Origin: Macrostomum lignano
Lineage: Eukaryota
Length of the DNA: 64,000 bases
NCBI GenBank assembly: GCA_002269645.1
Contig: NIVC01002488.1
Location: forward strand, 1 to 64,000
Direction of reading: 5' to 3'
The translations under genes were made by a program, and so were the position numbers. The first letter of the stretch is position 1; each line of letters begins with the position of its first letter. Positions 18,809 to 62,191 of the stretch are shown one piece after another. A model generated the notes under the pieces. The model was not told the origin of the DNA. It saw nothing but the letters and a program-made list of their open reading frames with translations, and did not search any database.

Positions 18809-18839
18809 ATTAAAACACTTTAAAACACAAAATGCTAAA

Positions 18840-20309
18840 CATAAAAGAAGCGCAATGTCAAATATAAAAGAGCCACCATGCCAAACAAAAAAAAAGTGCC
18901 ACCATGTAGAACACAGAAGAGACACCATGTCAAACATAAAAGAGCCACCATTTCAAACATAAAAGAGCCACCATGTGAAACATATACGTGACTCAATGTC
19001 AAACATTAAAGAGCCACCATGTCAAACATTAAAGAGCCACCATGTCGAACATAACAGAGACAACATTTCAAACATAAAAGAGCCATCATGTCAAACATAA
19101 AAGAGCCACCATGTCGAACATTAAAGAGCCACTATGTCAAACATAACAGAGACAACATTTCAAACATAAAAGAGCCATCATGTCAAACATTAAAGAGCCA
19201 CCATGTCGAACATTAAAGAGCCACCATGTTGAACATTGAAGAGCCACCATGTCAAACATTAAAGAGCCACCAAGTAAAATATAAAAGAGCTACCATGTCA
19301 AACATAAAAGAGCCACCATGTCGAACATAACAGAGACAACATTTCAAACATTTAAGAGCCACCATGTCAAACATAAAAGAGCCACCATGTCGAGCATAAA
19401 AGAGCCACCATGTCAAACATAAAAGAGCCACCATGTCAAACATTAAAGAGCCACCATGTCAAACATTCAAGAGAAACCATGTCGAACATAACAGAGACAA
19501 CATTTCAAACATTTAAGAGCCACCATGTCAAACATAAAAGAGCCACCATGTCGAGCATAAAATAGCCACCATGTTGAACATTAAAGAGCCACCATGTCAA
19601 ACATTAAAGAGCCACCATGTCGAGCATAAAAGAGCCACCATGTCGAACATAAAAGAGCCACCATGTCAAACATTAAAGAGCCACCATGTCAAACATTCAA
19701 GAGACACCATGTCGAACATAACAGAGACAACATTTCAAACATTTAAGAGCCACCATGTCAAACATAAAAGATCTACCATGTCAAACATAAAAGAGCCATC
19801 ATGTCAAACATAAAAGAGCCACCATGTCGAACATTAAAGAGCCACCATGTTCAACATTAAGGAGCCACCATGTCAAACATAAAAGAGCCACCATGTCAAA
19901 CATTAAAGAGCCACCATGTCAAACATTAAAGAGCCACCATGTCAAACATTCAAGATCAGCCATGTCGAACATAAAAGAGCCACCATGTAAAATATAAAAG
20001 AGCTACCATGTCAAACATAAAAGAGCCATCATGTCAAACATAAAAGAGCCATCATGTGAAACATATACGTGACTCAATGTCAAACATTAAAGAGCCACCA
20101 TGTCAAACATATACGTGACTCCATGTCAAACATTAAAGAGCCACCATGTCAAACATATATGACTCCATGTCAAACATATATGACTCCATGTCAAACATAT
20201 ATGACTCCATGTCAAACATTAAAAATAAAAAAGACACCATGTCACACATAAGGGAGCCACCATATCAAACATAAAAGAGCTACCATGTCAAAACATTATT
20301 GAGCCATTA
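18840..20309. repeat. 22-bp minisatellite (aaagagccaccatgtcaaacat)n, cargo of Helitron A; resumes at 24110-24440
   Basis: Read directly; the same unit occurs on both sides of the 20310-24109 insertion. Confidence 0.95.
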
Positions 20310-23904: not shown

Positions 23905-24639
23905 TTCGGAGCACCCCAGCCAACAATATAAATGTTTGCCTCAAATCCTAATTTTTTACGAATGTACTCTATTTTATGTTTAATTCTTACCTAACTATTA
24001 ACGAGTTTTTGTTTGAGTTTGACCTCAGATTTTAGAATATGAGTACATGCAAAATAGTTCCAGGGATTGAAATTCCCCGGGTTCAAAATCCGCGGGTTTC
24101 AACAGCTTGTGCCCAATATAAAAAGACACAATTTCAAATGTAAAAGGGCCGCCATGTCAAACATAGAAGAGCCACCATGTCAAACATAGAAGAGCCACCA
24201 TGTCAAACAACTAAGCCACCATGTCAAACATAACAGAGACACCATTTCAAACGTAAAAGGGCCGCCATGGCAAACATAGAAGAGCCACCATGTCAAACAT
24301 TAAAGAGCTACCATGTCAAACACAAAAGGGCCACCACGTCCAACATTAAAGAGCTATCATGTCAAACACAAAAGAGCTACCATGTCAAACATTAAAAAGC
24401 CACTTTTTTAAACAAAAAAGAGACACCATTTCAAACATAAAAGAAGTGTCATGCCAAACAAAATGAAACCATTATAAAGCTAAGGAAATTGTTGCACTAG
24501 CTACTTGTTCTCTGGTGGATGCTTGCTATTTAAGGATGGATACTTGCTATCAGGGGGATGCTTGCTCTTGGGGTGGAGAGTACTTGCTATCTGAGAGGGG
24601 GTTGCTAGATATCTATAAGGTATCTTTGTATCCAGGTTA

Positions 24640-26129: not shown

Positions 26130-29100
26130 TAGATTACTGCACTCGATAAGCCAAGGATTATTGCTATTAATAAACCAAGGATTACTGCTTGACTTACTTG
26201 ACTTAGCTGCAGGGTGGTCCGTAGACACAGCGGGGAAGCGAGGGTCGCCCATTCCGCTAGCCCCTGAAGGCCCGCAGACAGGCAGAGGCGTGGGGCCGGT
26301 CAGGGTGGTCCGCCGGTCCGTCCTGCAGCGTGATCTTCCGTTGGGAAGAAACTGGCTCGTCTAGTCGCCCGAAGGAACTGGATGAGCCGTGGGATGCTGT
26401 CGGGCTGGCAGACCTCGTCAATGGACGGGTTCGGCCCGAGGTAGCGTAGCCGGTCTCTGTTAAAGAAAGGGCAGTGACAGACAAAGTGCTGAGCATCTTC
26501 ATTGTCGCACTCGCAGAAGGGGCAAATTTCGCTCTCGAGGTCGCCTCGGAGGAAGCAGTGCCTGGCGAGGTAGCCATGGCCGGTAAGGGTCATGACAAGG
26601 GCTCGAATATCCTTCCGATTCTGGTTCAGAAGGATGTTTCTGAGCCTGTGAGACGGGCAAGGAACCGCGGCACGAGATTGCCGGCAGTTTTGGGTGCCCG
26701 CCCATCTGTCCCTGTGGAGGGAGTCAGCCCAGTCGTCGATCTGACGATTGATGACTGTCAAGGGCATAGGGACCAGGGGGGCAGGGCCGAAGAAAGAGCC
26801 AGAGCCGCCCCTCTTGGCGAGGGTGTCTGCCAGCTCGTTCCCCGGAAACCCTGCGTGCCCTGGGATCCACTTCAGCCTGACAGTATTGCTTCTGGCCAGG
26901 AGGTTGAGCTGCCGGGCGCAGTCGGCGACTGTCCGGGAGTTCGTTGTGGTGTGGCAAAGGGCCTGTAAGGCCGCTTGGCTGTCGGAGTGGATGACAATAG
27001 TCTTTCCTCTCGTAACCTTGACGTTCAGCTCTGCAGCGCAAGAGCTGATGGCAAGGACTTCGTTCTGGAAGACTGTGGAGAGTCTACCAGTGTGCTGGGC
27101 ATGCGTGGCAATTACGCGGCCGTTGATGATGATGCAGACCCCAAAGCCGGCGCGACCGTCTTTGATGGATCCGTCCGTGTAGCAATGGACCTCCTGGAAA
27201 TTCCAGTGGTCATTGGCAGCATCCCTAGAGGGGATGGTGACCTTGTAGCGCTGAAAGAGGTTGAGAGTGCGGGGTTCGCCGTCAGACAGGACGTGGAGCC
27301 CGCCGCTGTCTCTCAAGTCCTTGAGGCAGAGGTCAGCGTGGGGCAGAAGCTTGCGCTTAGCCATGGCCCTATGGGGCTGGATTCGAATGCCAGCGTCAGC
27401 TAGACGGCGGGCAGTCTTAGCCGCTTCCCTGCGGACAAAGATGTCCAGCGGAGGAATGTTGAGGAAGGCGTTGAGGCCATCGTAAGGAGCAGACGGAGGG
27501 GCGCTCATGATCGTGCGACAAGCGCGCCCTTGCGCTCTCCTGAGAGCCTCTAGACAGGTCTTTATCTGCAGGGCGCTAGCCCAGATCAAGCCGCCATACG
27601 AGATAGCGGGCCTAACCATTGCAGTGTAGATCCACCAGAGGCGCTTGGGGGTGAGCCCCCAGGTGGTGCCGACAGCCCTGCGCAATTGCGCGAGGACTGC
27701 GAAGGCCTTTTTGGCTTTTGTTTGAACGTGGGGTGACCAGTTCAGCCTGTGATCCAGGGTAATACCCAGACATTTAGTCTGCTTGCAGAAGGGGATTTCC
27801 CTTCCGTAAAGCGTGAGCGGCCGAATCTGCCACTTGGTCCTGCTGGTGAACATGATCGCTGCGGTCTTAGTCTCAGAGAGCCTTAAACCACAGCGGTCCG
27901 CCCATTGCTCAGCGGCGTAGATAAAGTTCTGAAGAAGGTCCCTGAGGGTATCAGGGGACGGACCAGATGCCACCGCGGTGACATCGTCCGCATATCCAAC
28001 TTTCAGAATGGGGTCAGGCCGAACATCCCGGAGGAGCTCATCGATGACCATATTCCAGAGAACTGGAGACAGCACCCCACCTTGCGGGCTACCTTTGCAG
28101 ACGGGGACCGTCCTCTGGTAGCCCAGCAGACTGGCGGTGGCCGTGCGATGGCTGATCATGTACATGATCCATCTGGTGAGATGTGAGTGCGTTTGCCTCT
28201 CACAAAGAGCTCTTCGGAACGCCTCAAAGAGGACGTTATCGAAGGCGCCAATGATGTCCAGGAAGATCCCCAGAGCAAAGCCATTACCAAGCACGGCCTT
28301 CTCGAGTTTATCGACCAGGACGTGCAGCGCGCTTTCAGTGGAGCGACCCGCCCGAAAAGCGTGCTGGTTCTCGCTGAGAGGTTTGTTCTTCAGCTCAACA
28401 GAGAGAAGGCGCCAAAGCACCAGTCTCTCCATCAGCTTGACCAGGGAGGAGGTCAAGCTGATCGGTCTGAAGGATTTGATAGAATGGTAGTCCGGGCGGC
28501 CTGGCTTAGGGATAAAGATCACCTTTGCCTCGGTCCATGCCTGTGGGACATAACCAAGCGTGATGCATGCCCGAAGAAGGCTGCAAAGTTTGCGCAGGAA
28601 GCCTGGGCATTTAACCGCCTCTCTTAGGAGGGCCGGTACAATGCCGTCGGGTCCTGGGGCTTTGAAAGGCTTGAAGGAATTTGCTTGAAGGGATTACTGC
28701 ACTTGGAAAACCAAGGATTACTGCACTCGATAAACCAAGGACTATTGCTCTTGGCAAACCAAGGATTACTGCACTCAGGAAGCCAAGGATTATTGCACTT
28801 GGAAAACCAAGGATTACTGCACTCGATAAACCAAGGACTATTGCTCTTGGCAAACCAAGGATTACTGCACTCAAGAAGCCAAGGATTATTGCTATTAATA
28901 AACCAAGGATTATTGCACTTGGAAAACCAAGGATTACTGCACTCGATAAACCAAGGACTATTGCTCTTGGCAAACCAAGGATTACTGCACTCAAGAAGCC
29001 AAGGATTATTGCACTTGGAAAACCAAGGATTACTGCACTCGATAAACCAAGGACTATTGCACTTGATAAACCAAGGAATATTGCACTTGATAGGCCAAGG

Positions 29101-31219: not shown

Positions 31220-32340
31220 TAATGGAGAGAAGAGAGGAAATGAGAGAAGCGAAGAGAGAGATGAGAAAAATGGGAAGAGGAGAGGAGAGGAGAGGAGAGA
31301 CAGGAAAGGGGAGAGAGGGGAGAGAGAAAAGAGGAGAGAGAATGGGGAGAGGAGAGGAGAGAGAATGGGGAGAAAAGAGGAGAGAGAATGGGGAGAAAAG
31401 AGGAGAGAGAATGGGGAGAGGAGAGGAGAGAGAATGGGGAGAAAAGAGGAGAGAGAATGGGGAGAGAAGAGGAGAGAGAATGGGGAGAGAAGAGGAGAGA
31501 GAATGGGGAGAAAAGAGGAGAGAGAATGGGGAGAAAAGAGGAGAGAGAATGGGGAGAGGAGAGGAGAGAGAATGGGGAGAGGAGAGGAGAGAGAATGGGG
31601 AGAAAAGAGGAGAGAGAATGGGGAGAGGAGAGGAGAGAGAATGGGGAGAGTAGAGGAGAGAGAATGGGGAGAGGAGAGGAGAGAGAATGGGGAGAGTAGA
31701 GGAGAGAGAATGGGGAGAGTAGAGGAGAGAGAATGGGGAGAGGAGAGGAGAGAGAATGGGGAGAGTAGAGGAGAGAGAATGGGGAGAGGAGAGGAGAGAG
31801 AATGGGGAGAGGAGAGGAGAGAGAATGGGGAGAGGAGAGGAGAGAGAATGGGGAGAGGAGAGGAGAGAGAATGGGGAGAAAAGAGGAGAGAGAATGGGGA
31901 GAAAAGAGGAGAGAGAATGGGGAGAAAAGAGGAGAGAGAATGGGGAGAGGAGAGGAGAGAGAATGGGGAGAGGAGAGGAGAGAGAATGGGGAGAGGAGAG
32001 GAGAGAGAATGGGGAGAGGAGAGGAGAGAGAATGGGGAGAAAAGAGGAGAGAGAATGGGGAGAAAAGAGGAGAGAGAATGGGGAGAAAAGAGGAGAGAGA
32101 ATGGGGAGAAAAGAGGAGAGAGAATGGGGAGAGGAGAGGAGAGAGAATGGGGAGAAAAGAGGAGAGAGAATGGGGAGAGGAGAGGAGAGAGAATGGGGAG
32201 AGGAGAGGAGAGAGAATGGGGAGAAAAGAGGAGAGAGAATGGGGAGAAAAGAGGAGAGAGAATGGGGAGAAAAGAGGAGAGAGAATGGGGAGAAAAGAGG
32301 AGAGAGAATGGGGAGAGGAGAGGAGAGAGAGAAGAGAAGA
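31220..32340. repeat. 23-bp purine-rich minisatellite (ggagagagaatggggagaggaga / ...aaaaga)n
   Basis: Read directly. Confidence 0.95.
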
Positions 32341-32789: not shown

Positions 32790-34840
32790 GGTACCACTTT
32801 CGAGTTACGAGAGGTGCCAATTTGAGGTTACTAGAAGCGCCACTTTAAGGTTACTAGAAGCACCACTTTGAGATTACTAGAAGCGCCACTTTGAGGTTAC
32901 TGGAAGCGCCACTTTGAGGTTACTAGAAGCGCCACTTTGAGGTTACTAGAAGCGCCACTTTGAGGTTACTAGAAGCGCCACTTTGAGGTTACTAGAAGCG
33001 CCAGTTTAAGGTTACTGGAAGCGCCACTTTAAGGTTACTAGAAGCGCCACTTTAAGGTTACTAGAAGCGCCACTTTATGGTTACTAGAAGCGCCACTTTG
33101 AGGTTACTAGAAGCGCCACTTTGAGGTTACTAGAAGCGCCACTTTGAGGTTACTAGAAGCGCCAGTTTGAGGTTACTAGAAACGCCACTTTGAGGTTACT
33201 AGAAGCGCCACTTTGAGGTTACTAGAAGCGCCACTTTGAGGTTACTAGAAGCGCCACTTTGAGGTTACTAGAAGCGCCACTTTGAGGTTACTAGAAGCGC
33301 CAGTTTGAGGTTACTAGAAGCGCCAGTTTGAGGTTACTAGAAGCGCCACTTTGAGGTTACTAGAAGCGCCAGTTTGAGGTTACTAGAAGCGCCAGTTTGA
33401 GGTTACTAGAAGCGCCACTTTGAGGTTACTAGAAGCGCCACTTTAAGGTTACTAGAAGCGCCATTTTAAGGTTACTAGAAGCGCCACTTTGAGGTTACTA
33501 GAAGCGCCACTTTGAGATTACTAGAAGCGCCACTTTGAGGTTACTAGAAGCGCCAGTTTGAAGTTACTAGAAGAGCCACTTTAAGGTTACTAGAAGCGCC
33601 ACTTTAAGGTTACTAGAAGCGCCACTTTAAGGTTACTAGAAGCGCCACTTTGAGGTTACTAGAAGCGCCACTTTGAGGTTACTAGAAGCGCCACTTTAAG
33701 GTTACTAGAAGCGCCAGTTTAAGGTTACTAGAAGCGCCAGTTTAAGGTTACTAGAAGCGCCAGTTTGAGGTTACTAGAAGCGCCAGTTTGAGGTTACTAG
33801 AAGCGCCACTTTGAGGTTACTAGAAGCGCCACTTTGAGGTTACTAGAAGCGCCACTTTGAGGTTACTAGAAGCGCCACTTTAAGGTTACTAGAAGCGCCA
33901 CTTTAAGGTTACTAGAAGCGCCACTTTGAGGTTACTAGAAGCGCCACTTTGAGGTTACTAGAAGCGCCAGTTTGAGGTTACTAGAAGCGCCAGTTTGAGG
34001 TTACTAGAAGCGCCACTTTGAGGTTACTAGAAGCGCCAGTTTGAGGTTACTAGAAGCGCCAGTTTGAGGTTACTAGAAGCGCCACTTTGAGGTTACTAGA
34101 AGCGCCACTTTAAGGTTACTAGAAGCGCCATTTTAAGGTTACTAGAAGCGCCACTTTGAGGTTACTAGAAGCGCCACTTTGAGATTACTAGAAGCGCCAC
34201 TTTGAGGTTACTAGAAGCGCCAGTTTGAAGTTACTAGAAGAGCCACTTTAAGGTTACTAGAAGCGCCACTTTAAGGTTACTAGAAGCGCCACTTTAAGGT
34301 TACTAGAAGCGCCACTTTGAGGTTACTAGAAGCGCCACTTTGAGGTTACTAGAAGCGCCACTTTAAGGTTACTAGAAGCGCCAGTTTAAGGTTACTAGAA
34401 GCGCCAGTTTAAGGTTACTAGAAGCGCCAGTTTGAGGTTACTAGAAGCGCCAGTTTGAGGTTACTAGAAGCGCCACTTTGAGGTTACTAGAAGCGCCACT
34501 TTGAGGTTACTAGAAGCGCCACTTTGAGGTTACTAGAAGCGCCACTTTAAGGTTACTAGAAGCGCCACTTTAAGGTTACTAGAAGCGCCACTTTGAGGTT
34601 ACTAGAAGCGCCACTTTGAGGTTACTAGAAGCGCCACTTTGAGGTTACTAGAAGCGCCACTTTAAGGTTACTAGAAGCGCCACTTTAAGGTTACTAGAAG
34701 CGCCACTTTGAGGTTACTAGAAGCGCCAGTTTGAGGTTACTAGAAGCGCCACTTTAAGTTTACTAGAAGCGCCAGTTTGAGGTTACTAGAAGCGCCAGTT
34801 TAAGGTTACTAGAAGCGCCAGTTTGAGGTTACTAGAATCT
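32790..34840. repeat. 23-bp minisatellite (gaggttactagaagcgccacttt)n, about 88 units, with a 667-bp higher-order duplication
   Basis: Read directly; three rare variants recur at an offset of exactly 667 bp. Confidence 0.97.
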
Positions 34841-41809: not shown

Positions 41810-44233
41810 TCACTCCCCGTGCAGCCTACTGCCAGTAGGACTAGTTGAATACGACCGCCTCTTGCCGAAGCGTAGAATGCGCGAATAGGTGAACGAGCCG
41901 AGCAGAGCGTAGAAAGCCAGCGCGGCAACCCACAGGGGCCGGTTGCGATGGGCCCGGCCGCACACCACGTACCAGTCGCTATAGTCTGCTGGCAGCTCGC
42001 CTTTGGCGGCCGGGCAGGAGAAATCCCAGTCTTCGTCCATGTCCCTCTCGCAGACGTAGCGGTGCCGAACCTACGGTAAGGCCATCGAAAAATACAATTA
42101 CTTGAAAGCAAGCTCAATTCCAGCAAGCTCAAATGATACAAAGATAACGTATAATGTGTTACCTACCTGTAATTATCTGTAATTTAATTGATAATTTATA
42201 ATATGCCTTTTACTCTACGATCAAGGATGTACACCCTTAGAGTTTTCGTCCGGAATTTTAAGCTTATTTTGATAGGCGACCTACCCACTGCTTCGCACAA
42301 CCGATTCGTCTAATACTCGTGTCTCTGCTACCTACACGACTGCTTCTTATGACCTGTCCGTAACTGATACTCCATGAATTGTCATCCGCTATCTATAAAG
42401 ACTGTTGAACTCACCTGTCCAGAGAAGTCCTTTTGCTCAACTCTGCACGGCCCGTAGGTCTGGTGGATACCGTCGCTCACGTGATCCTCCGGCCGGCCAA
42501 AGAACATGATGCAAAACAGAGCGGCATAGTAACAGCAGAGAGCCAGGTTGATAGAGAAATCTGGAGCAGCACGAATGAATGGACCGCACGGATGCTTCAA
42601 CAGCGAGCGTCTTGGCGACTGTCGAGCAATGGCTACCAGGTAGAGACCCACACCGACCATCAGGCTGGACAGTGTCGGCACACCTTGGCGATCCCAACTG
42701 ATCAGCTGTAGCAGCGCCATTTGCACCATCATTAGCGGCGTCGACAAGAGACAAACAGCAACCATGGCAACGGCTTCAGATCGACGCCAGTTCAAATAGA
42801 CCGTTCTAATCAGGAAGCTGAAGGTCCCGGTGAAGGTGATCACCCATAGGGTGCTGCCTACCGGAACGCCGAGCATTCGATAGCTGATTGGCGGGTCCGT
42901 GTCATGCCAGGTCCACCTGACGAATCAGTTCGTGAATTTCGCGTATTGCTGACTATGTCTGCTATTAGATGCTTTCGGAATAGTAGAAAGATTGATTGAC
43001 AGATCATTCGACAGGTTCAATACATTCTCATTGGTGAAGCACGTTTTAAGTAAATATTTATCAATGCATCGTTACTGGATCTAATCTTTTAACATTTATT
43101 TTTGAGTACTGAATGCTGAATAAACGGCTGATTTATTGGGATTACATCCAATGATATTATCATGCTTGATAGTATGAATGGTTAATTTTTATCATGTTCA
43201 TTGGTGTTCGTCGTTATTTCCCGTAATGTTTTCTGTACGAGAGCAGCAGTATTGGGTTATGGGTCGTGAGTCGTGTATCAAGGGGCCCATAATCATAAAT
43301 TGTTGTGCAATAACAATAGGGGTTATAGCCCAGAGGTTAGAGTGTCAGATTCATGACTTGAAGGTCCGTGGTTCGACTCCCGATCCCACTGGAACAATTT
43401 GTGTCCTTTAGCAAGTCACTTAACTCTGCATTGCTTCGGTTCACCCAGCTGTAAAATGGAGTGCCAGCATTAGCTGGGGTAATTGAGTGTGTGTGGCGAC
43501 CCCCCAGTCCTTGGACTGAACAGCCGTACGCAGCCTTCAGATGCGCCGCGCAATAGCTGCGGCTGAGCTGTCGGTTGCACATCTGGCCCAATTGGGCGCA
43601 GGTGTAATCAGTTATGATGCAAATGTAATTAGGCTTAAAAAGTCCCTACACCCAGATAGGGGCGTCACTGTTTCATTAGTCAAACACAAACTCACCAAAG
43701 AAACTTGATACCGATGATGTCGTACGGCATGTAGATCATGATGCCCATGAGACCGCTGAGACAAGCTTCCGCCAGAGTCGGTAGGCCCAGCCGCCAAGCG
43801 CTTACCGTAGCAAAGTACATGAACGTGCAATAGACGCAGCAGATGTACAGCGGCAGCCTTGGCGTGAGCATTATTGTTGCTTGAGCCTGCCAGAAGTTGT
43901 CAACCAGAGGCAGGTACATAAAAAATATGTCGTTTGATGAGCCGGCAAGAAAGCTGGCGAACCAGACGAAGACGTGCCGACGGTCTTGTCGAATAGCGTG
44001 GATTAGCGCCAAAGCGGCAAGGAAGATAAACAGATACTCGCCGATCAGAAACGTTGGCAGAACCTGAAAAAAAGATTTGTTTAAATCTCGGATCTGTGCA
44101 CAATACGAGCTAAAACTAACAAATAAAACGAATTAAAGTTTGTTAAAATTACCTGCCACTGTTCTTTCGGCGACGAAATGTGCTTCCAAGGGATATGATC
44201 CCATTTCGAGTACCAAGTTTTTATTAAATCCAT
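41810..44233 (-). CDS. Multi-pass membrane protein, DUF7802-like, paralogue A, 403 aa; exons 44233-44153, 44063-43696, 42916-42415, 42070-41810
   Basis: Phase-consistent GT-AG junctions. Conserved blocks LALIHAIR, DNFWQAQ..MLTPRLPL, GLMGIMIYMPYDIIGIKFLWWTWHDTDP, GVP, and HRYVC..DMDEDWDFSC...WYVVCGR. The family name is from recall and needs an HMM check. Confidence 0.85.
43319..43631 (+). mobile_element. tRNA-derived SINE with a CORE-like central domain (family 2), antisense in intron 2 of paralogue A
   Basis: Head tagcccagaggttag...ttcatga...ggttcgactcc, followed by tgtgtcctttagcaagtcacttaac...cccagctgtaaaatgg, which resembles the CORE (MIR-type) domain. Confidence 0.75.
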
Positions 44234-44980
44234 AGTTTCGTTGAGTCTTGGTGGACCTATAACAGATTTCTATAGATCGGTAGTCTGAATATTAACCAAG
44301 TGTAGCTGGAAGCTTACTTTAAGAGATCCAAAATATAATATTTATCGACTCTCTACGTGTAAATTTGTTAGTGTGCCGATTTTTAAAAAAAATGTGGCGC
44401 GAGAGCGATAGCACTAGTACAGCTGAGCTCTGCTCAAATGCGAGAAGAGAGAAAGAGAGAGAGAAGAAAATCTGGCGCAGTCTTGCACGGACTGTCACTG
44501 TATAGCGACCCTCACTGAGTGTCTGTAGCTTACTAGCTAGCTCCACTATGCTCACACACAACCTTTAACCTTGCTCTATCACTCAATTGTTCCGCTGTGT
44601 GGCCTGGGCAGCTCCAAGATAAGCGGGTAGCAGCAATTCAGGCTCCAGTTGGCAGTCAAGTCAAGGTCACGTACGACAGATACTTGAAATTCGCCTTTCT
44701 AGCGAGTAAATTCCGTCTGAGTCCCTGTCGAATAAATTCCATTTGCCCACTTGTCGAGTAAATTCCATCTGGCTGCATAGTGGAAGAAGCTTACCTGACT
44801 TACATGCATACTTAAACAAAAAATCTGTGCTTTTATTTGCTCAGGTTTTTTGTTCCTACTCAGTCATTCCGGTCGCTTAATTTTCATAGCCTTCTGAAAG
44901 TCTGGAAACAAGGTTTTGTTCAAGATAGTTCAAAACTACTGGTGCACTCGATCGTAATCACAAATGCTAAAATAACAGCA

Positions 44981-46234
44981 ATGGCAAAGTCCAGCATCAA
45001 CATCGCCCCCGATTACAATCAGTATCCATGGCGACACGTCAACAGCATCCACCAGGTTTTTCACGTAGGTTCTATTCTTATTAAAGTACAATAGAATTAA
45101 AATTTTACCAATTGAAATGCATGTTTTTTATCTATAACTTCTTTCAAGGACTCTCCAGTGCTACTAAGCCTCGAGCTGACCACTCTCAGTCTCTACTCGT
45201 TGCTAATCCTACACGCCATTCGGCGACGCAAACTATCGGTCCTACTTGCTGCCACCATCTCTGGCGCTGTCAACGAAGTTGTATTCACCAGCCTGCCGAT
45301 TGTGAATAACTTCTGGCACGCCCAGGCATGGCTGATGCTCGGTCCTCGCTTGCCAGCCTGGCAGCCAGCTCTGTACGGCCTATTCATCTACGTAGCCTGT
45401 CAGTCCGCCGACATTTTACACAGTTTTGGCTGGAACAGCCGCATCGGTCGTGCGGCTGTCGCAGGCATTTTAGCCTTCCTGCTCCTATTCCCCATGGACG
45501 CCGTCTGCGTCCGGTTTGTGGCTTACACCTGGCACGACTCCGATCCGCTGCTGGCAGACCGAGTCATGGGCGTGGCAGCCGGTAATGGCATGTTTGCTGT
45601 AGCTTTTCCTTTCTGCTTTGCCGCGCTGACTGCTTCTAGTAGACGTTTTGGTCCAGCTATCGCCTGCTTGCTGAGCACTCCGAGTATGGTGCTGCTCACC
45701 CTGCCGCTGGATCAGTTCGTAGGCGACGGTGTACCTACGCAAACCAGCCTGATCGCCCTGTTAGTCGGCATGACGTCAATTGTTGTTGTAGCAGCATCCT
45801 TCACGTCCGGCTCGCCAGAAAGTTCAAAGACGACTGCAGACTTGACTATACCGCTGGTGGGGTTCATCTATTATTTAGTGCTGCTTTCAGTTTCAATTCT
45901 GGCTGATCCAGCCGGCCAGAAAAGCGTCGGATTTCATCAGCCTCTTTCGCCGATCGGCCCGTGCCTGGGCGACATTACCGACCTGTCTGCAAGCGGTCGT
46001 CAGCGTCAAATATACCTTTGTCCAAACGAATTATCAGCAGCCACAAGGGATGTCCTGGATCCGACCTGCGACCCGACGAGAAGCATCGATCAGCACTGGT
46101 ACGTTGTGTGCGGACGGCCATTCGACTCTGCAGGCAACAGTGGTGGCAGCAGGCGAACATTCGTTATCAAGCTGGCTTGCATTGCAGCACTTGGGATGCT
46201 GGGCTTGACCAGCTGTCAGCGGGGCTTGTCGTGA
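44981..46234 (+). CDS. Multi-pass membrane protein, DUF7802-like, paralogue B, 389 aa; exons 44981-45064, 45149-46234
   Basis: Aligns to paralogue A: PWRHVNS vs PWKHISS, LILHAIR, NNFWHAQ..MLGPRLP, PMDAV..YTWHDSDP, YLC...WYVVCGRP. The donor cac|gtaggt and acceptor ttcaag|GAC put the intron at the same aligned position as intron 1 of A. Confidence 0.85.
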
Positions 46235-47882: not shown

Positions 47883-50800
47883 ATGCACAAAACCGTTTTT
47901 AATCACAAACTATTACAAGGAGCGGTCTGCGCAAAAATGGAGACAAAATTCAAAAGCATCGCCCAAGAGTCGCCATACGTGTTGCCGCGCATCGAGGCTC
48001 CGATCCAGCAGTTCAAGGACGCCGTTAAGCATTGCGAAAAATGGCTTGAAGGTGCTGAACCAGTGATGGAGCAGCTGCATCACCTTCAGCAGCTGCCTGA
48101 CCACGAACGCGGGAACGTAAAAAATCAAGTGCTATTGCTCGCATCCGCACTTGGCAAGTGGCCATTGGTTTCAAAACTGCTGCATAACGACGCAGACCCT
48201 AACTGTGAGCACGAATCTAGCAAGCTCACGCCGTTGCACTTGACTACTCTCGGTGGGCACGTTAGCACTACTCAGACATTGCTGTCCGTTCCCTCTATTA
48301 ACGTGAACGCCACTGATGCTGCAGGAAACACGCCTTTGATGTGCGCGGCTCAATCAGGCTTTCACGCTTTGGTAGCGCCGCTTCTAAACCATTCGGCGGA
48401 CTATTCGGCCCGCAACAACAAAGGATACACAGCGTTCGACGTTGCGTTGGCCAACGGTCGAATTAAAGTACTCAAAATGTTAATGGAAAAGTGGAATCCA
48501 CTTGATGCAACCAATCTGGAAGAGAAAAGAAACTTTTATAAAGCTTGCTGCTTCGAAGCTAGCAAAAACAGCTGGACTGATATATTGGCTTTGCTGGAAA
48601 ATCACGGAGTTTCTCTGAATATTCAGTCAGAATCAGCCGCCGATCTTGTTTTAACCTCCTGCGTCTATATGCAAGAGGGAATTCTACACTTTTTAGTTGC
48701 ACGCGATGTACCTCTTGACCAACCAGAGCACGAGGGCATGCGGCCATTGTTTCACGCTTGCTACAATGGCTCGTTCAATATGGTGAAGCTTCTGTGTGAA
48801 AAGCACGCCGACATCAATGCGCAGGACTCGCAGGGTCGCTCACCCGCTTTTATGGCTGCAGCGGGTGGACATCTTCAAATCCTGCAGCACTTAGAAGAGC
48901 AAGAATGTGACCTAAACGTGATTACCAAATCTGGTGATTCCCTACTTGAAGCTGCTATTGACAGCGGCAATTTCGAGCTATTCGTTTATCTTAGAGAACG
49001 TGTGCAAAGACCTGCGAATTCGCGCGCCACCTTGGCACACAGAGCTGCGGAAAAACTCCGAACCGATATACTAGAGGCCGAACTTTCTGAAGACCGAGAC
49101 CTGATTGAGAAGGAAGATTTCGATGGAAATACTCCACTTTTACTGGCCTGTCAACGAGGATCAAAACAGTTGCTGACACTGTTGCAGAAACTAGGCGCGG
49201 ACTTTAGCCATGCCAATCAGAAAGGCAACACACCGGCGCTATTGCTCAGTGCCATAGGAAACCTGCAACTGCTGCAGATTGTTCATAAAGCTGGTGGAGA
49301 CTTAGACCATCCAAATTGGAAGGGCGATACTCCTATTCTGATGGCTTGTCGATACAATCACTTTAGCGTGGTCAAGTTCTTTAGCGATCATGGGTGCACG
49401 ATGGACTGTGCGAACTATCTGGGGCAAACCCCAGCCTTTTTCTCAGCCAGACATGCAAAGAAAGAATTGCTGCGCTTCCTGGTGGAACAAAAAGCGCCTG
49501 TTGATGACGAGACGACCGATGGAATGACACCCTTGCTAGTAGCAGCTAAGGCAGACCACACAGAGTCAGTCAAAATATTGTTGAGATCGAATTGCCGAGT
49601 GGAACAAGTCAACTCTGAAGGCCGAAATATCGTCTCATTTTCCGCAATCAACGGCAATGTGGAAATGCTAAATATGGCAATAGAAAACAAAGCCGATCTT
49701 CTCGTACGCGAAACGTCGGGAAACACTGCAGTAATTGACGCCTGCCGATATGGCAGACTAGAGGTTTTGGAAATTCTGTCGAAGCAAGCTTGCCCTCTGG
49801 ACGCCAAGAACTACGAAAGCAGAAGTGGGTTGCACTTAGCAGCCGAATTCGGGTTCATCAAAATCGCGAATTTTCTTCTTGAAAAGGAGGTCAATTGCAA
49901 CTCCCGCGACAAGCTGGGCAACACTCCGCTGATGCTAGCCGCTGAAAAAGGCTTCTATAAAATTATTCAGCTTCTCAATCAGAAAGAATGCGACGTGCAC
50001 TTGTACAACAAAGAGGGTAAAACTGCGTTGCACTTCGCCAGCCTAGGAAACAACACTCGAAGCATACAGCTGTTACTCATTGCGGGCTGCAACCCTATGC
50101 AGACTGACAATGCAGGTGCTACACCTCTGATGCTCTCCTGCCAAAGTAGCAAACCAGAGGACAAAAATTCAAATGAGGCCTTTAAAATGCTTTGCGAGTT
50201 TTCGGCGACCGATGGACGCCGGTCATTGTTCTTCTATGACAACAGGATGCAAACCTGCGTTCACTACGCAGCTGAAGTCGGTCAGTACCGTATTCTAGAA
50301 GAGCTACACAATCTTGGATTGCGAATGGATGAGCCGAACCGAGACGGCGAAACACCACTCATCATAGCCGCTAAAGGGCGGTATAGGAAAAGTGTTGAAT
50401 TCTTGATTACGAAATGCAGTGCTTCAGTATCGGCTGTAGACAATAAAGGTCAGTCTGCAGTTCATAAGGCGGCGTTGAAAGGGCACTTGCCTGTGGTTCA
50501 ACTGCTCGAGACCAACGGAGCAGAAATGGACAGGCCTGACAGCTGCGGACGGACCCCTTTGCTGCTAGCCGCAAGTCGCGGTTTTGATAGCATTGTAAAC
50601 TTTTTGCAGGATAAACGCTGTATTGATACAATAGTCTGTCGCGAACGAAACGAGAACATTTTGCATTTGGCGGCGATAGGTGGTCATACGACTATCATAG
50701 AAAGACTTAAAGACAGACAGGATCTTGTCGAATCGTTTACAACTGAAGGAGAAAGCTGTCTTACCTTGCTATTGAAGTCGCGGGATTGTCCGGATCTGGC

Positions 50801-53800
50801 TGTCTTATTACTGACTAAATTTCATGCGAAATACCCTGACTCCTGTGGTCAAAAAGAGCTGCTGATTGCTGCCAGGTTCGGTCATAAAGCCACTCTGAAA
50901 GTCATTCTAAGCCATCCTTGCTGCAACAAAGACGCTGTAGACAGTGAAGGTAACTCAGCATTGATGCTGTCTGCCAGAGAGGGTCATCACACATGCGTGC
51001 GTCAACTACTTGACTCTGGACTTGATCTCAAGCGCCGAAACAACAATGGAGCAACCGCGCTTCATCTCTGCTGCGCCAATGGAAAACGACTTTGCGCTGA
51101 TTTTCTACTCGATGCTTCCGAAAACGAGGGCGTAGAAGAGTCTTTTGTTGACTGGAAAGACAAGCATGGCGACACGGCACTTATTAACGCAGTTCGCTCC
51201 GGTCTATCAGGTCTTGTGCGCACACTAATTCGCAAAGGAGCCCGTTGGGATATCGCAAACAATCAGGGTTACTCTGCGTGGACGTATGCCTTTTCAAGTC
51301 ATCGTCTTGATTTTTTGAGCTTCCTGAAAGAGAAAGGACATCCTCCAGAGACGCTTGAATTGTTGCTGAACGTTTCAAACCTAATAGGAAACTCTAAGTT
51401 TGTTTTGGATGTTTTTCAAAAAGCTTTGTTGCAAAAGAAGCAGGCCTTTTTAGATAAGTTTCTACTCTTCTTCGCAGACAGAATGACGGATCTGACTCAG
51501 CCATGCAGCGACGGCTCCTACCTGCTGCATGCTTGCTCCGAGATGAATCTTACTTCTGCAGCCAGCAAGCTGCTGAAGGAAGGCGCAGACATCGAATGTC
51601 TTGATAGGCAGAATCAGACGCCATTTCTTCGAGCCGTAGCTAAGAATCGAACTGACATGGCCAAATTTCTGCGCAAAAAGGGGTGCAAAATTTATGTCGT
51701 CGACGTAGAAGGTCGAGATGCTTTAATGCTTGCCAGTATAAATCGGAACCACGCACTTTTTGATTGGCTGCTTTGCTTGAACCTAAAGGTTGGATTGCAG
51801 GACAAATATGGTTACTCAGCCTTACACCATGTTGCTAAGCAAGGAAGCCGTCCAATGTTCAAAACCTTGCTGTTGGAATGCAGTGAGAAAGTGGCAGGCC
51901 TAGTTGAAAATAAGCACGGTCTAACCATGGCGCATTTAGCCGCACGTCGAGGCAACGGCCGATTGCTATTAGAAATAGGGAATTCTATCCATCGAAATCT
52001 TCTCAAGACCACGCCTGGAAAGCCGTCAACGTTTGGCATCGCGTGTTACCGTGGCTGGACAAATATTGTCAAGAAATTGATAGCCCTAGGTCACAGCCCG
52101 CCAGTTACAGAGATGTCGCCTTATATTGCAGCTGCTTGCGCTGGCGGTCATCTGCAGGTTTTGATCGAATTGCTTAAAGACGGCTCTGTAAACCCCTCGC
52201 GCAGTGTATTTCAGGCTGCGGGGCGTCACGGAAAGCTATCTGTGGTGGATTATCTGCTAACAACATTCCCAGAAAACAATAACAGAAACGACATTCTTAT
52301 TGCTGCTGTTGCTCAAGGGCATTCGCACATTGTGCGTTACATGTTGGATCAGAAAATTTCAGCTGACCAGATGGACGATAGGCAGAACATGCCTTGTCAC
52401 GTTGCTGCTCTCAGAAGCCACGCGTCTCTGCTGCCAAGCTTGGTCTGCGGTGAGCTGCACTCGGCCCCACTAAATGGCCGTCGGCGAACGCTCCTTCATC
52501 TAGCCTGCATCGGTGGTCAGGAGTCTGTAGTTCGGCTGCTGCTATCAAATGCTACTGACGAGTTCATAGCAGCTGAAGATGGAGACAAATGCTCTGCATT
52601 ACTGCACGCTTGCAGCCAGGGCAGTAAAGAAATAGTTGCGTTGCTGCTAAAGCAAAACAGCGTCAATCCAAACAGCTGCGGAGGGCTTCATGGTACTACC
52701 GGTGTGCATCTGGCATGTCAGGCGGGCCGTCAAGACCTGCTTGAAGTTCTGGCAACAGCTGGAGCTGCTCTGGACGCAGCTGATTTAGAGGGATCAACTG
52801 GCCTGTTGATGGCCGCAGCCCGTGGCCATGCGGATGTAGTTCGATACCTCCTAGCTAACGGGTGCAAATGGGATGCAGTAAATAAGCATGGGGCCAACGT
52901 GATTCAACTGGCTGTGAGTGGCAATCACATGAGCATATTGACTATTCTTTGCGAGCACAACTTTCTACAGCCGCAGTGCTTTGCTAACCAATGCCCCGAT
53001 GCTCAGCTGGAAGTTGGACACCCCATTGGCAGTTCCGCATCCCCGGGCGATGAAGACTGCGCCTTAGCCTACAACAATCTCGACTTATGCAAAGAAATGA
53101 AGCTGGGAGCTGAAAATGCGGATGTGGTTGAAGAACCAGACGCTGGCCCTGAAGCTGGTGAATCTACATCAGTCGTCAATTCTGAAGGATTGGCTGTTCA
53201 TGCGGGTATCAATGACGACGAAGATGAAATTAACGACGTTGGGTCATGGATTGAGTCAAGAGGCGGCAGAGCCAGCGGAGCTGCTTTTTCAACCAGACAG
53301 CTATCGGTCACTAGTTCGAATTTTGCCAGGTAAAATTTTATATATTACCGTACGTACGATTTACTGGGAAAGTAGATTTTAAAATAGGACATAGCAGATG
53401 TGCGTTTTTGACGTCTTTGGATCTGACTATATCGATTTAGTCTCGTGCCTTAACAAGTTCCCTGGGTGTCATCATACGATTTTCATCCATAACGGTCAAC
53501 CAGCTTAAGTTAAAATAGAACGTCAACCCACCAGGATAAATAAAAAAACGCTTTAATTTTCATAGGTGCGGCACAATCCATGAGCTGGAGGACGGTGCAG
53601 ATTCCAGTGAGCTGAAACTACGGGGCACCTTCGGCAGAGCGACAAACTTCTGGACCGTTGAAGCGCAACAAAACAGCAAAGGTGACTGGCTGGTGAAGAA
53701 GTGCCTGAGTTGGTCTGAGACTCCCGATAGCGATCCTTCAAAGACTTTAGGCAACCTAAAGTTGTTGCTTCGAAAGCTTTACGCATTGAAAAGAAGAGAA

Positions 53801-54502
53801 AACCGTTTCAGCGACAAGTCTCACCTTCTATGGCCCATAGAGTTCTCCATCGCTTATCACAGTCGCATTGAAGTGTGCATCGTACACCCGTACGTCAAGT
53901 GGCACCTGCTACAGTATCTCGATCAGCTGTATAGCAATCGAGATCAAGACTCGCGGCTTGAAGATGTGAGCTTTCACAAGTCTATAACGTCGGGCGTGTT
54001 GCACGGCCTTGCTGAGCTACACAGACGCAGCTTAGTTCACGGATCCCTGACTCTGAAAAGCGTTTACTTGACGCAGGATAAGCGCGTAATGCTAAAAGGA
54101 TTCGACGGCATTAATGATATTCTAGCGGAGTTTCTGGAACCGACACGAAATAGACTGCTTCGTGACGCCCACACCAAGGCTCCGGAGCTGTTCCGCGATC
54201 GGAATCGTCAGCCTACAAAGGAGAGCGACATCTGGTCGCTTGGAATTTTGTTGCACCAGCTGGTTACGGGAAAGACACCGTTGGCAAATAAATACGACAC
54301 TGAAGTGAAGGATTTCTATTTAGAAGGCCAAGTGGCACGCCTACCAGAGTTTCTATCGCTCGGAGACGCCCAGCTGCAGTCAGTTCTCGCAGGAAGCTGC
54401 CGAATCGACCCCAACAGTCGGAAAAGTGCATGCGAACTGATGGAAATCCTGCGGCCAACTGCAAGACATACTTCCTGTTGTGAGGCTGTGGATGATGATT
54501 GA
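47883..54502 (+). CDS. Giant ankyrin-repeat protein with a C-terminal pseudokinase domain, about 2127 aa; exons 47883-53329, 53566-54502
   Basis: Dozens of TPLH/GNTPL..AA..G ankyrin motifs over ~1600 aa, then an acidic linker. The phase-2 intron AG|gtaaaa...ttttcatag|G joins in frame to a kinase fold: RGTFGR, LVKK, VHGSLTLKSVYL, LKGFDG, APELF, SDIWSLG. The true start may lie in an unseen upstream exon. Confidence 0.88.
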
Positions 54503-54559
54503 TTTTACTCTAATACTATAACCCTGTTTATTAAATATTTTATCTAGGTGCATGTAAAC

Positions 54560-56250
54560 TACAATTAATTACTTGATTCAGAAAATGCATGAAATGATGC
54601 GCTCGCTTCGCTCGCATTTTTCCTATGCTACTTACTGGCTCATCGTCCCGAAGCGCACTCGTGGCCAAGACATTTACGCACTCAAAACTGAATCTTAGAC
54701 GCATTGTACGAACGCGAACTTATTCTCTCTCGTGGCCATAGACATCCGCGTTATCTGCACGCTTTTCGGGTACGAGTGTCAGCGATAGACATATATCTAT
54801 ATAACTTTAAGAGCGTTTGAAGTTTAAGAAGTGCCCAGAAATCACGCGATCTACAACTTAACCATGGAGCCACCGGCTAAGCGTGTCTACTATGTAGACT
54901 GCAAGAAACTGCCAGGAGAAGCCATTTCTGGAATGTCATCATCACAGATTGACATTCTCCTTCAACAGCAAACCGAGGAGCGGTTTATGGAAAAGCAAAT
55001 GGATGAGCGTCTGATCGAGCAACCGTCAAATGGAGATGGCGAGTTTGTGCTGCCCGAGGATATTGACCTGGATGGCATATGTTCGACTGCGTGCGTTGAA
55101 GACCTCGAGAAAGCTATCAACGACCTAGAAGACAGTGTCGCGAGTAACAATACCACACGACAGACGGATCAGTACGTCAAAAGGCTGTTGGCCTTCATGC
55201 AATCGAATCCGTCATTAAAAATTGACCTGCTGACGGCTGAGCCGGAGGATGTCAACCGTGTGCTGCGAGTGTTCTACGGCACGGCTTGTAAGCCTGACGG
55301 CGGATTTTATTCACCAGCGTCGCTAATCTGCATTCGTGCGGCCTTGACACTCAACTTTCATGGAAACGTGAGTGGGTGCACCTTTAATTTGCCAAAATGA
55401 CGGTACCTTTTTTACATCTACTTTAAAATGGACAATACTGCGAAAGTGACGCAGGCCTCTCATACAGTTCTTTGCAGTACTGTTGTTTTGTTAAATTGTT
55501 ACTTAAAATATACACGCTGACAAACCATGTTAAAGTTTTGCCATAGACATCAATTATCTGCACGCTCTTTTATTATCAGCACGCTTTTTGTATAGACTGA
55601 CTATATGATTTTACCATAGACATAGGCGTTATCTGCACGCTTGAGCGTTGTAATGTAAGATTACTACTAGGCTTTCGAGCCAGCAAGTCCAATGCCAGCA
55701 AGTCCATTGTCGGCTGATTTTCCATGCAAGAATGGCATTCTTGCACTCTTTTGCGTGCAGGAATGGATGTCTATGGTAAAATCTCACTGAAAAAGCATTA
55801 GGCGCAGAAATGCATTCCTGCACGGTTTTGTGCATTCCTGCACGATGAATCATCCGACAATGGAATTCCTTCACGTTCACTCGTGCGTGAAGGACATCGT
55901 GCACTCGTGCGTGCTGATGTCATTCCCGCACTCGTGACCGTGCAGGAATATATCAATGTCAACGTAGTGCGCCAACGTAGTGCTCGAGAGCGCCAAGATG
56001 ATTTTCAATATCTGCACGCTTTTTTGGCTACGCCGCATAGGGTTGGGCCATAGACTGTAAGATTAATGCACGCTTTTTGGACCAAAAATGCACGCTCAGT
56101 CATGGGACAATGGGTGTGATCTAGCGTTGTTTTTTTTCTATATTTTTTGATAACTATGATGGCTATGATTGCTGAACTCCCAGTTGCTTTTGAACTAAAG
56201 ATATCGACACTGTTCTGTTGACAAATACATTTATAGTGGCAGTGTGTTCC
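54560..56250 (+). mobile_element. Internally deleted Crypton-type (tyrosine-recombinase/DUF3504-like) element; residual ORF 54864-55400
   Basis: The ORF contains NNTTRQTDQYVKRLLAF...EDVNRVLRVFYGTACKPDGGFYSPASLICIRAAL, typical of the N-terminal core-binding part of Crypton/ZMYM-KCTD1-type YR proteins. It is fused directly to an FHGNVSGCTFNL tail with no catalytic domain. The flanks carry repeated ccatagac and atctgcacgct motifs. Boundaries are approximate. Confidence 0.65.
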
Positions 56251-57307: not shown

Positions 57308-58076
57308 ATGCATAGCAATTATCCCCTTATTATGCTGCTCTGTGTAGCTCTTATTGTTGGACCAGCGACAGCTCGAGTCATGTTCTCCATTGCCAAAATG
57401 AGGAGCGTCTCAGCTCCGGTTGCCATGGAGACTCTGACTGGCACCGGCAGACTGAAATGCGCCGAGCTGTGCAGTCTGAGATCTGACTGCTATGGCTTTA
57501 GCTGGCTGATGCAGGGTCTGTGCAGATTTTTCAACTTCAATGCTTTCTACAATGACGCCTGGGTGAGCTTGGATGCCTGCGATGTTTACAACGTCAGGAA
57601 GGGTGAGTTTGATGCACGTTATAAATATATATGTAGATTTTTTCAGCACCTTAATCTTGAAGTTATGCTACTTAATTTGTATTCTAGACGCAGTGAAGCT
57701 GAGCTTCATCAGCTGCAACCAGAGCTCGGTCCAGATGAGTGGAGTTTGCGAGAGAGCATTCGATGGTGATACGAACCAGGATTACTCTCATAGATCCTGC
57801 ACCCACACTATTGGCGGTGAGGTAGGCTGGTGGGAGGCCCACCTGTCCCGACCTGCCCTCGTCTCGCACGTCACCATCTACAACCGGGCGGGCTACAGCT
57901 ACCGAATGAGAAAACTTTCCCTGCAGGTGGACGGCTCTGAGTGCTACCGAGTGAACAGGACGACGGACTTCTCTGTGGCCACCTTCCAGTGCAACGCCTT
58001 CGGCAGTAAATTTGGAATAGTCGGCTTGCAGGAAAATTCAATCAACATCTGCGAAGTGGAGATCTTTGGATTTTGA
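57308..58076 (+). CDS. Secreted PAN/apple + F-type (fucolectin, F5/8C) lectin, 227 aa; exons 57308-57602, 57688-58076
   Basis: Hydrophobic signal peptide; PAN pattern CAELCSLRSDCYGFSW...C; phase-1 intron G|gtgagt...ttctag|AC; F-type motifs AFDGD, SCTHT, WWEAHL, VTIYNR and ICEVEIFG; AATAAA at ~58096. Confidence 0.88.
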
Positions 58077-60950: not shown

Positions 60951-62191
60951 ACAAATCAAAACCGCCTGTTCGATCTTTCGCAGAGAAGCTTTCCGGCTAG
61001 CTTCAGAAGGACATCTTTCAGCTGCAAAGTTGTGCCTTAAACACCTTTGCAGAGACAGTGGTTCTTGCCAGTTTAATAAATTGGCGCAAGCGGCAGCTAG
61101 CAATGGTCACCTGGACGCTGCTAAATATTTTGTCTCACAGATCAGTGGCCGATCGCTCAAAGATGGATGCCTCGACGATATCGCAACCGCAGGATCTTGT
61201 AGAGGTCGCCAGAATGACGTTAAATTCTTCGCCTCCCAGATTAGCGACCAATCACTGAAAGAAAAATGCTACTCAAAATATGCTCAAGAAGCAACTACCA
61301 AAGGTCACCTTGATGTCGTTGAATATTTTGCCTCACGAATCAGTAAGCCATCGGTCAGAGCTCAATGCCTCTCAAAATCTGCAAAAGCAGCACCAAGGAA
61401 CAATCACTTGGATGTCGCTAGATACTTTGTCACACAGATTAGTGACGAATCGCTCAAAGATGAATGCCTCTTGAATTGTGCAACGGTAGCAGCTTGAAAA
61501 AGTCACCTGGATGATTTCGAATTCTTCGCCTCTCACATCAGCGACCAATCGCTCAAAAATGAAAGCTTCATCGAATGTGCAGAAGAAGCGGCTATGGAGT
61601 GTCACCAGGATGATGCTAAATATTTCATTTCAAAGATCAGTGACCACTCGCTTAAAGAGCAATATCTATCCGCTTGTGCAAAAGCAGCCGCTGCTGTAGG
61701 TCACTTGGATATGGCAAAACGTTTCGCCCTACAGCTCAGCGGTCAGTCGATTAAAGATCGATGTCTCACAGCTTTTGCAATGGAATCAGCTTGGAGAGAT
61801 CCCGTTGATGATGCTAAATACTTTGCTTCAGAGATTAATGACCAATCGCTTAAAGAAAAATGTCACCTATGTTGTGCAAGTAGCAAGAAGAGATATGCTA
61901 GGTGTCTCTGGATATTTCTTCTCTCAGATCGGTGACCAATCGCACAAAGGTCAATTAGACATGGCTAAATATTTCGATTCGCAGATCAGTGACCAATCGA
62001 TAAAGGTCCTATGCTCATCAGAATGTGCCAAAGAAGCAGTTTGGAAAGATCACTTGAATGTCTCTAAATATTTTGTCTCACAGATCAGTGACCGATCGCT
62101 TAAAGACGGATGCCTCGCAGATTGTGCAAAAGCAGCTTCATTGAGAGATCATTTGGATGCTGTGAAATATTTCGCCTCCCAAATCTTGTGA
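60951..62191 (+). pseudogene. Disrupted 33-aa (99-bp) ankyrin-like repeat exon, about 12 repeats
   Basis: AAxxGHLDxxKYFxSQISDQSLKxxCLxxCA units at 99-bp spacing (61006, 61105 ... 61798, then 61949, 62048, 62147). In-frame TGA at 61495-61497, a frameshift/deletion near 61870-61945, and acceptor ttttcag| at 60950. Confidence 0.75.

Follow-up and report, generated by a model that had tools for sequence, protein, structure and literature searches.

The first 64,000 positions of contig NIVC01002488.1 of the flatworm Macrostomum lignano (the whole stretch of DNA analysed here, called the window; window coordinates are contig coordinates) contain a gene for a protein of 2109 amino acids (aa), in which a long array of ankyrin repeats is followed by an acidic linker and a C-terminal kinase domain that is, judged by its sequence, a pseudokinase. 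We somewhat favour the view that this is one expressed and selectively maintained M. lignano gene, which encodes a cytoplasmic, catalytically inactive scaffold with the pseudokinase as a binding or allosteric module. The architecture and the loss of the catalytic residues are shared with an orthologue from a second species.

The gene has two exons, and all of its features lie on the plus strand. Exon 1 (47937-53329) starts with the ATG at 47937 and covers the N-terminal helices, all of the ankyrin array and the greater part of the acidic linker. The intron (53330-53565) is 236 nucleotides long, is of the GT..AG type and interrupts the reading frame in phase 2; its donor is GCCAG/GTAAAA at 53329/53330 and its acceptor TTTTCATAG/GTGCGG at 53565/53566. 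Exon 2 (53566-54502) begins within the linker, has no ATG ahead of the N-lobe and carries the rest of the linker and the complete pseudokinase domain up to the stop codon (54500-54502). Thus the open reading frames (ORFs) at 47883-53333 and 53693-54502, which are in compatible frames, are joined across a canonical intron. Translation of the spliced coding sequence (47937-53329 plus 53566-54499) gives exactly the protein PAA57445.1 of GenBank (2109 aa, BOX15_Mlig018177g1; UniProt A0A267E774, "Protein kinase domain-containing protein", Macrostomum lignano), for which the annotated gene range on the contig is 47937-54502 and which can only be reproduced with this junction. An exhaustive protein search likewise found the kinase region to be 100% identical to the 2109 aa public protein. 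The Mlig_3_7 annotation combines RNA-seq assemblies with a de novo transcriptome; the transcripts were split wherever a trans-splice or poly(A) site had been mapped, and the ORFs were called by TransDecoder (PMC5730564). Because this annotation is transcriptome-built, the exon junction is backed by RNA data rather than by ab initio prediction. An ORF of 5.4 kb is beyond what chance could produce, and the two ORFs are one gene. The single phase-2 intron, which had been proposed from the sequence in the original prediction, is thus confirmed by the exact match, by the transcriptome-derived model and by the orthologue, which has the same architecture in a single ORF. The gene is already catalogued in GenBank and UniProt as a predicted, unstudied protein and is not new as a sequence; searches with the gene identifier, with the run accession of the orthologue and on the topic of ankyrin repeats, pseudokinases and flatworms found nothing relevant in the literature.

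The length of the product had originally been given as 2127 aa and was corrected. An in-frame ATG is present upstream at 47883, but we place the start at the second ATG (47937), since this is the annotated start, the N-terminus METKF is common to the public protein and the orthologue, and an AG splice acceptor (47918-47919) is located 17 nucleotides upstream. This AG is a candidate spliced-leader trans-splice site or an acceptor in the 5′ untranslated region (UTR). In M. lignano, trans-splicing and polycistronic genes are common (PMC5730564), and we consider it more likely that the AG is a spliced-leader site than that it is the acceptor of a fusion to the gene for a DUF7802 membrane protein located upstream. 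A candidate polyadenylation signal, ATTAAA, is found at 54530-54535, 28 nucleotides after the stop codon. Retention of the intron would place a TAA (53331-53333) right after exon 1 and would yield an ankyrin-only isoform without the pseudokinase. No compositional anomaly was detected that would suggest that the intron-poor exon of 5.4 kb arose by horizontal transfer or as a retrogene (GC content 0.47-0.49, compared to 0.38-0.57 across the window).

The ankyrin array spans 48123-52961. Pfam Ank_2 matches it in 27 stretches (E=1e-201), and the sequence is made up of the tandem 33-residue repeats that define the family. With an iterated hidden Markov model of the repeat, 42 repeats were found between aa 81 and 1693 (numbering of the 2127 aa form), a span that has room for approximately 48 repeats of 33 aa each; the estimate made from the length had been roughly 40 or more repeats. 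Degenerate repeats or short helical inserts split the array into approximately eight blocks. No DNA-level repeats of at least 30 nucleotides are present in the coding sequence, therefore the ankyrin repeats are old and individually diverged and do not result from a recent expansion. A model of the first 330 residues shows approximately 60 residues of low-confidence helices that run into the ankyrin repeats, and no separate domain. The protein would be cytoplasmic; neither a signal peptide nor a transmembrane segment is apparent in the N-terminus. Canonical ankyrins (ANK1-3) carry ZU5-UPA and a death domain after 24 repeats. The protein does not qualify as one of them: the families ZU5, UPA and Death were not found with Pfam, and matches to Ankyrin-2 are restricted to the repeats (approximately 25% identity). 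The array is followed by a low-complexity, acidic and probably disordered linker, which in genomic coordinates (52962-53641) spans the intron. In the AlphaFold2 (AF2) model, the predicted local distance difference test score (pLDDT) is below 50 over the first 25 residues of exon 2, which belong to the linker.

The C-terminal domain (53642-54466) has the bilobal protein kinase fold. It is recognised by the Pfam families Pkinase (51.7 bits, cut-off 31.7) and PK_Tyr_Ser-Thr (49.4 bits). The AF2 model, made with a 26-sequence alignment, shows a complete bilobal fold (mean pLDDT 81.2, predicted template modelling score 0.82), in which alphaC is long and the GFD motif is immediately followed by a short helix (residues 181-190, moderate pLDDT). 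At least 1979 kinase chains in the PDB match this model at E<=0.001 (Foldseek), thus family profiles and fold comparison both identify the eukaryotic protein kinase fold. The protein ends approximately 15 residues beyond it.

Motifs were assigned with an alignment to PAK4 and with the multiple alignment of the 26 sequences, which includes 24 other kinases. The beta3 Lys, the second K of LVKK in place of the canonical VAIK, is retained (53699-53701) in an aligned column and is kept in the orthologue. Also retained are the APE motif (54179-54187), located within the most conserved stretch of the domain, RLLRDAHTKAPELFRDR, the DIWSLG of alphaF (54227-54244), found in both alignments, and the alphaH-I Arg. 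HRD is replaced by HGS (54038-54046; HGC in the orthologue), with loss of the catalytic Asp, and DFG by GFD (54098-54106; the same in the orthologue), in which the Asp sits two residues past the DFG Asp position. These are the calls that the original prediction had made, together with Ser for the catalytic-loop Asn, and the alignments agree with them; the losses go further, however. The Glu of alphaC is a Lys, the Lys of HRDxK a Thr, and the glycine loop, canonically GxGxxG, is a degenerate GTFGRA that is not conserved between the two species. Altogether, both species have lost five of six signature positions (glycine loop, alphaC Glu to Lys, HRD Asp to Ser or Cys, HRDxK Lys to Thr, DFG to GFD). 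By sequence, a kinase domain counts as a pseudokinase if one or more of VAIK Lys, HRD Asp and DFG Asp are missing; here the catalytic Asp and the in-register DFG Asp are both missing in both species, and catalysis has probably been lost with them. The Ser at the catalytic-loop Asn position alone is no sign of inactivity, because the active kinases PAK4/5/6 carry a Ser there in their wild-type form (hrdiksdSillt in the PDB alignments). The pattern S[IV]xLTxDxRVxL around the catalytic loop (54038-54061), which includes this Ser, is common to the query and the group II PAKs. At E<=0.01, Pfam detected ankyrin and kinase families only, and no four-helix bundle (4HB), KEN, death, TIR, CARD, NACHT or PBD domain; no effector (pore-former, nuclease, death-fold or NTPase) and no membrane anchor was seen in the sequence.

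The orthologue (P0158) was found in a full-length search. It is 2118 aa long and 53% identical over 100% of the length, and the two proteins align collinearly from METKF to the kinase domain, with 49 gap positions. Repeats and kinase are encoded in one uninterrupted ORF, which is present on two Logan contigs (runs SRR28338163 and SRR28338164); the source species is presumably a macrostomid. Its kinase domain retains VKK, HGC, the Thr, the Ser and GFD as well as an invariant RLRDAHTKAPELFRDR-type segment, and the longest stretch that is invariant between the two proteins is the activation-segment/P+1/APE region. Identity is approximately 50-75% along the repeats, 50-68% in the C-lobe of the kinase and approximately 20% in the linker, compared to approximately 55% outside the linker. 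According to the Nei-Gojobori method, synonymous sites are saturated (proportion of synonymous differences, pS, approximately 0.75), which precludes a proper ratio of nonsynonymous to synonymous rates (dN/dS) and leaves contrasts of the proportion of nonsynonymous differences (pN) only: 0.28 for the repeats, 0.26 for the C-lobe, 0.40 for the N-lobe and 0.53 for the linker. Saturated pS together with constrained repeats and a constrained C-lobe indicates that the dead kinase is ancient and under purifying selection, and that it is a functional non-catalytic domain rather than a decaying one. For the repeat surfaces, at which a dN/dS analysis had been proposed, the rates themselves are blocked by saturation, but the identities could be compared: identity between the species is 70-88% at the framework positions of the repeats and approximately 30-60% at the surface positions, which is an ordinary pattern without hypervariability. 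The two contigs (L001 and L002) are 99.98% identical from 15 nucleotides before the ATG to the 3′ end and unrelated upstream (L001 1-492, L002 1-81); the species of the orthologue may thus use alternative 5′ exons, or may also have a splice acceptor immediately ahead of the start codon.

If the protein is a scaffold, the approximately 42 old and individually conserved ankyrin repeats would form several solenoid blocks with many protein-binding surfaces, and the disordered acidic linker of approximately 130 aa would tether the C-terminal pseudokinase flexibly. The pseudokinase has kept the full kinase fold and the docking elements of the C-lobe (activation-segment/APE region, alphaF, alphaH-I Arg) while the phosphotransfer machinery was lost. 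Most likely it is not an enzyme but binds or allosterically regulates a partner, for instance an active kinase or a substrate-like protein, with its conserved C-lobe and activation-segment surface. Its location in an exon of its own would be in line with an old domain fusion.

The affinity of the domain within the kinases is faint. A single-sequence search ranks PAK4 first among PDB entries (42 bits, E=4e-10), followed by PAK6, MAP2K5, PDK1, TAO3, PLK3, BRAF, SPAK, MARK and TNIK. With the 74-residue core from alphaE to APE, the best matches are TAO3, MAP2K5, PAK4-6, SPAK/OSR1, MAP4K4/TNIK/MINK1, GCN2 and PLK1. The domain appears to be an orphan with a weak STE20/PAK-like flavour (PAK4-6/TAO/MAP4K), and descent from STE20 kinases may be hinted at by these rankings. 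In the exhaustive search of 1.84 billion representatives no close relative besides the protein itself was found; high library totals come from proteins with 4-10 kinase domains, and the best single-domain scores do not exceed 59 bits and extend over query residues of approximately 100-297 (C-lobe) only. A word-indexed protein search returned weak generic kinases only, whether the query was the kinase domain by itself or a two-sequence profile. A protein with ankyrin repeats and a kinase (P0198) was rejected as a relative: it has an ordinary active HRD/DFG kinase and is only 25% identical. The other M. lignano sequences with the gene among the matches, P0159 and P0280 of the older ML2 assembly, have an identity of 90% or more, and the next M. 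lignano match is an ankyrin-only protein with 26% identity. Since only copies of at least 90% identity were returned, there is no diversified paralogue family among the search returns. The protein is best read as one of the Macrostomum lineage and restricted to it.

Several points weigh against a scaffold that is expressed, conserved and derived from a STE20 kinase. The scaffold role is a default assignment from the domain types, and the retained beta3 Lys makes nucleotide binding and a ligand-dependent switch possible. The mapping of conservation, with n=2 sequences, is coarse, the Logan contigs of the orthologue may be RNA or DNA, and the gene was not found in the supplements of M. lignano expression papers. 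As to the kinase affinity, the lead of STE kinases over AGC, PLK and TKL kinases (PDK1, PLK3, BRAF) is approximately 5 bits only, and the nearest matches in the large library are a heterogeneous set of fungal and bacterial non-RD kinases with uninformative names.

The original prediction had described the motifs as MLKL-like and had proposed a receptor of the innate-immune or cell-death type, with the ankyrin solenoid as the sensor of a ligand and the MLKL-like pseudokinase as the conformational switch. We regard this as quite improbable. HG[S/C] and GFD do literally resemble the HGK and GFE of human MLKL (PMC6013482). In a search of the PDB with a two-species profile, rat MLKL is the third-best family (37.6 bits vs 42.1 for PAK4). 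The AF2 model has a helix directly after GFD, and a helix after the DFG equivalent is a feature of MLKL structures. As the alphaC Glu is a Lys, the beta3 Lys would need another partner, which might be the Asp of GFD. But the motif variants are frequent elsewhere: in approximately 330 kinase-domain alignments from the large library, a hit list biased to query-like sequences, HGD or HGN stands in place of HRD in 121, and GFE, GFG or GFD in place of DFG in 25. HGx and GFx thus recur in unrelated divergent kinases and are not specific for MLKL. The catalytic core fits best with STE20 kinases, and MLKL is absent from the best 60 PDB matches both in the single-sequence search and in the search with the core. 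A Foldseek comparison against MLKL, RIPK, ILK and RNase L had been proposed as a check; the top PDB matches of the model are MerTK, RIPK1, Aurora A, HPK1, ASK1 and c-KIT, generic kinases that do not discriminate among kinase families, with MLKL not among the top 50 and no preference for MLKL, ILK or RNase L. From the motifs and rankings we conclude that the resemblance to MLKL is most probably convergent.

The remainder of the protein does not favour a receptor either. Pfam found none of the 4HB, KEN, death, TIR, CARD and NACHT domains, the N-terminal 60 aa or so are low-confidence helices leading into the repeats, and the N-terminus lacks an apparent signal peptide or transmembrane segment. 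The orthologue is collinear at saturated synonymous divergence, and the paralogue count, which had been suggested as a check, revealed no divergent family; this combination is not the pattern of a diversifying receptor. Positive evidence for an immune or cell-death role was not found beyond the motif resemblance. A broader form of the idea supposes that capture of a ligand or partner by the very long ankyrin solenoid would flip a nucleotide-binding switch in the style of MLKL, built on the pair of beta3 Lys and GFD Asp, so that the protein would be an independently evolved stress, immune or cell-death sensor-switch. We give it equally little credence.

Less probable again is an atypical active enzyme with relocated catalytic residues or with a different chemistry on the kinase fold. 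The beta3 Lys is kept and an Asp is present two residues past the DFG Asp position, the active PAK4-6 likewise have a Ser in place of the Asn, and some proteins first called pseudokinases later proved to be active. Against this stands that the residue in place of the catalytic base is a Ser in one species and a Cys in the other, that the HRDxK Lys is a Thr and the alphaC Glu a Lys, and that the glycine loop is degenerate and unconserved between the species. Least probable of all is an artefact of the gene model, in which ankyrin repeats and kinase belong to separate genes or the DUF7802 membrane protein upstream is part of one larger gene: intron retention does lead to an immediate stop after exon 1, and the older ML2-based UniProt entries A0A1I8JJ02 and A0A1I8H716 fuse DUF7802 to the ankyrin gene, but the public model derives from transcripts that were delimited by experimentally mapped trans-splice and poly(A) sites, the orthologue has repeats and kinase in a single ORF, L001 has an in-frame stop 24 nucleotides before the ATG and neither L001 nor L002 has DUF7802 sequence upstream, exon 2 has no ATG before the N-lobe, and the fusion donor (G/GTGGCA) is weak.

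Two divergently oriented genes for DUF7802 multi-pass membrane proteins are located upstream of the ankyrin-pseudokinase gene, at 44873-46234 (plus strand) and 41810-44233 (minus strand). The ML2-based fusion models A0A1I8JJ02 and A0A1I8H716 connect a donor in the plus-strand DUF7802 gene (46143/46144) to the AG at 47918-47919. The plus-strand DUF7802 gene and the ankyrin-pseudokinase gene may share one trans-spliced transcriptional unit. Downstream, ORFs at 54831-55400, 57573-58076 and 61030-61497 (all on the plus strand) are possibly exons of neighbouring genes; among them, a weak QRICH1-like match (below the Pfam cut-off), an F5/8 type C/NedA-like galactose-binding domain and a faint ankyrin-like match were seen. 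A 292 aa ORF at 5492-6370 (plus strand) has a helix-loop-helix domain (Pfam HLH, E=2e-12) and is probably a basic helix-loop-helix transcription-factor gene or an exon of one. The minus strand carries at 26300-28522 an ORF of 740 aa with reverse-transcriptase and RNase H domains, flanked by tandem-repeat arrays; no other retroviral domains are present, which suggests a non-LTR (long terminal repeat) retrotransposon. Minisatellites were found at 14161-15459, 18837-20292, 24118-24444, 31242-32330 and 32794-34837; at least four arrays have a 23-bp period with differing consensus units, and the units at 18837 and 24118 are one unit, rotated. Further arrays have periods of 15, 17, 24, 27, 31 and 38 bp. 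The minisatellite arrays cause the spurious long repetitive ORFs and the GC-skew spikes of the window.

As it stands, the gene opens no long-standing question; it is an uncharacterised, lineage-restricted variant of the ankyrin-plus-pseudokinase theme. If studied, it would join the few ankyrin-plus-pseudokinase scaffolds (ILK, RNase L) as an independently evolved case and would show how selection maintains a kinase domain once catalysis has been lost. RNA interference, in situ hybridisation and transgenesis are available in M. lignano, therefore the function can be tested.

Among the known systems, MLKL shares with the flatworm protein the Gly after the catalytic-loop His, the G-F-acidic motif instead of DFG and the retained beta3 Lys. 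The switch of MLKL is triggered when RIPK3 phosphorylates its activation loop. In contrast to MLKL, the flatworm protein has no N-terminal executioner domain (four-helix bundle) or brace, according to Pfam and the N-terminal model, and its core is closer to STE20 kinases. The group II PAKs (PAK4/5/6) together with TAO3, SPAK/OSR1 and MAP4K4/TNIK are the best PDB matches and have in common with it the S[IV]xLTxDxRVxL pattern, the Ser at the Asn position and DIWSLG. These kinases are, however, active with HRD and DFG, the PAKs have an N-terminal CRIB/PBD and no ankyrin repeats, and identity is approximately 25-30% over the C-lobe only, the N-lobe not being alignable by sequence search.

RNase L has an ankyrin array upstream of a pseudokinase as well. 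There, nine ankyrin repeats are the ligand sensor and a C-terminal KEN domain is the ribonuclease, whereas the flatworm protein has 42 repeats, no KEN/Ribonuc_2-5A domain in Pfam and no preference for RNase L in sequence or fold. ILK resembles it in the order of ankyrin repeats and C-terminal pseudokinase. It is an adaptor and not an enzyme, has approximately four to five N-terminal ankyrin repeats in approximately 450 aa and is pan-metazoan. The flatworm protein, in contrast, has 42 or more repeats in 2109 aa, ILK is outside its best 60 PDB matches, which does not support ILK orthology, and the searches found no recognisable relative of it beyond one other species. A precedent for catalytically dead kinase domains combined with long ankyrin arrays, in structural or scaffold roles, is provided by the Nek kinases of the protist Giardia. 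In these the order is the opposite one, with the kinase first, and the Nek family is massively expanded, whereas the flatworm lineage has one gene, with the repeats first.

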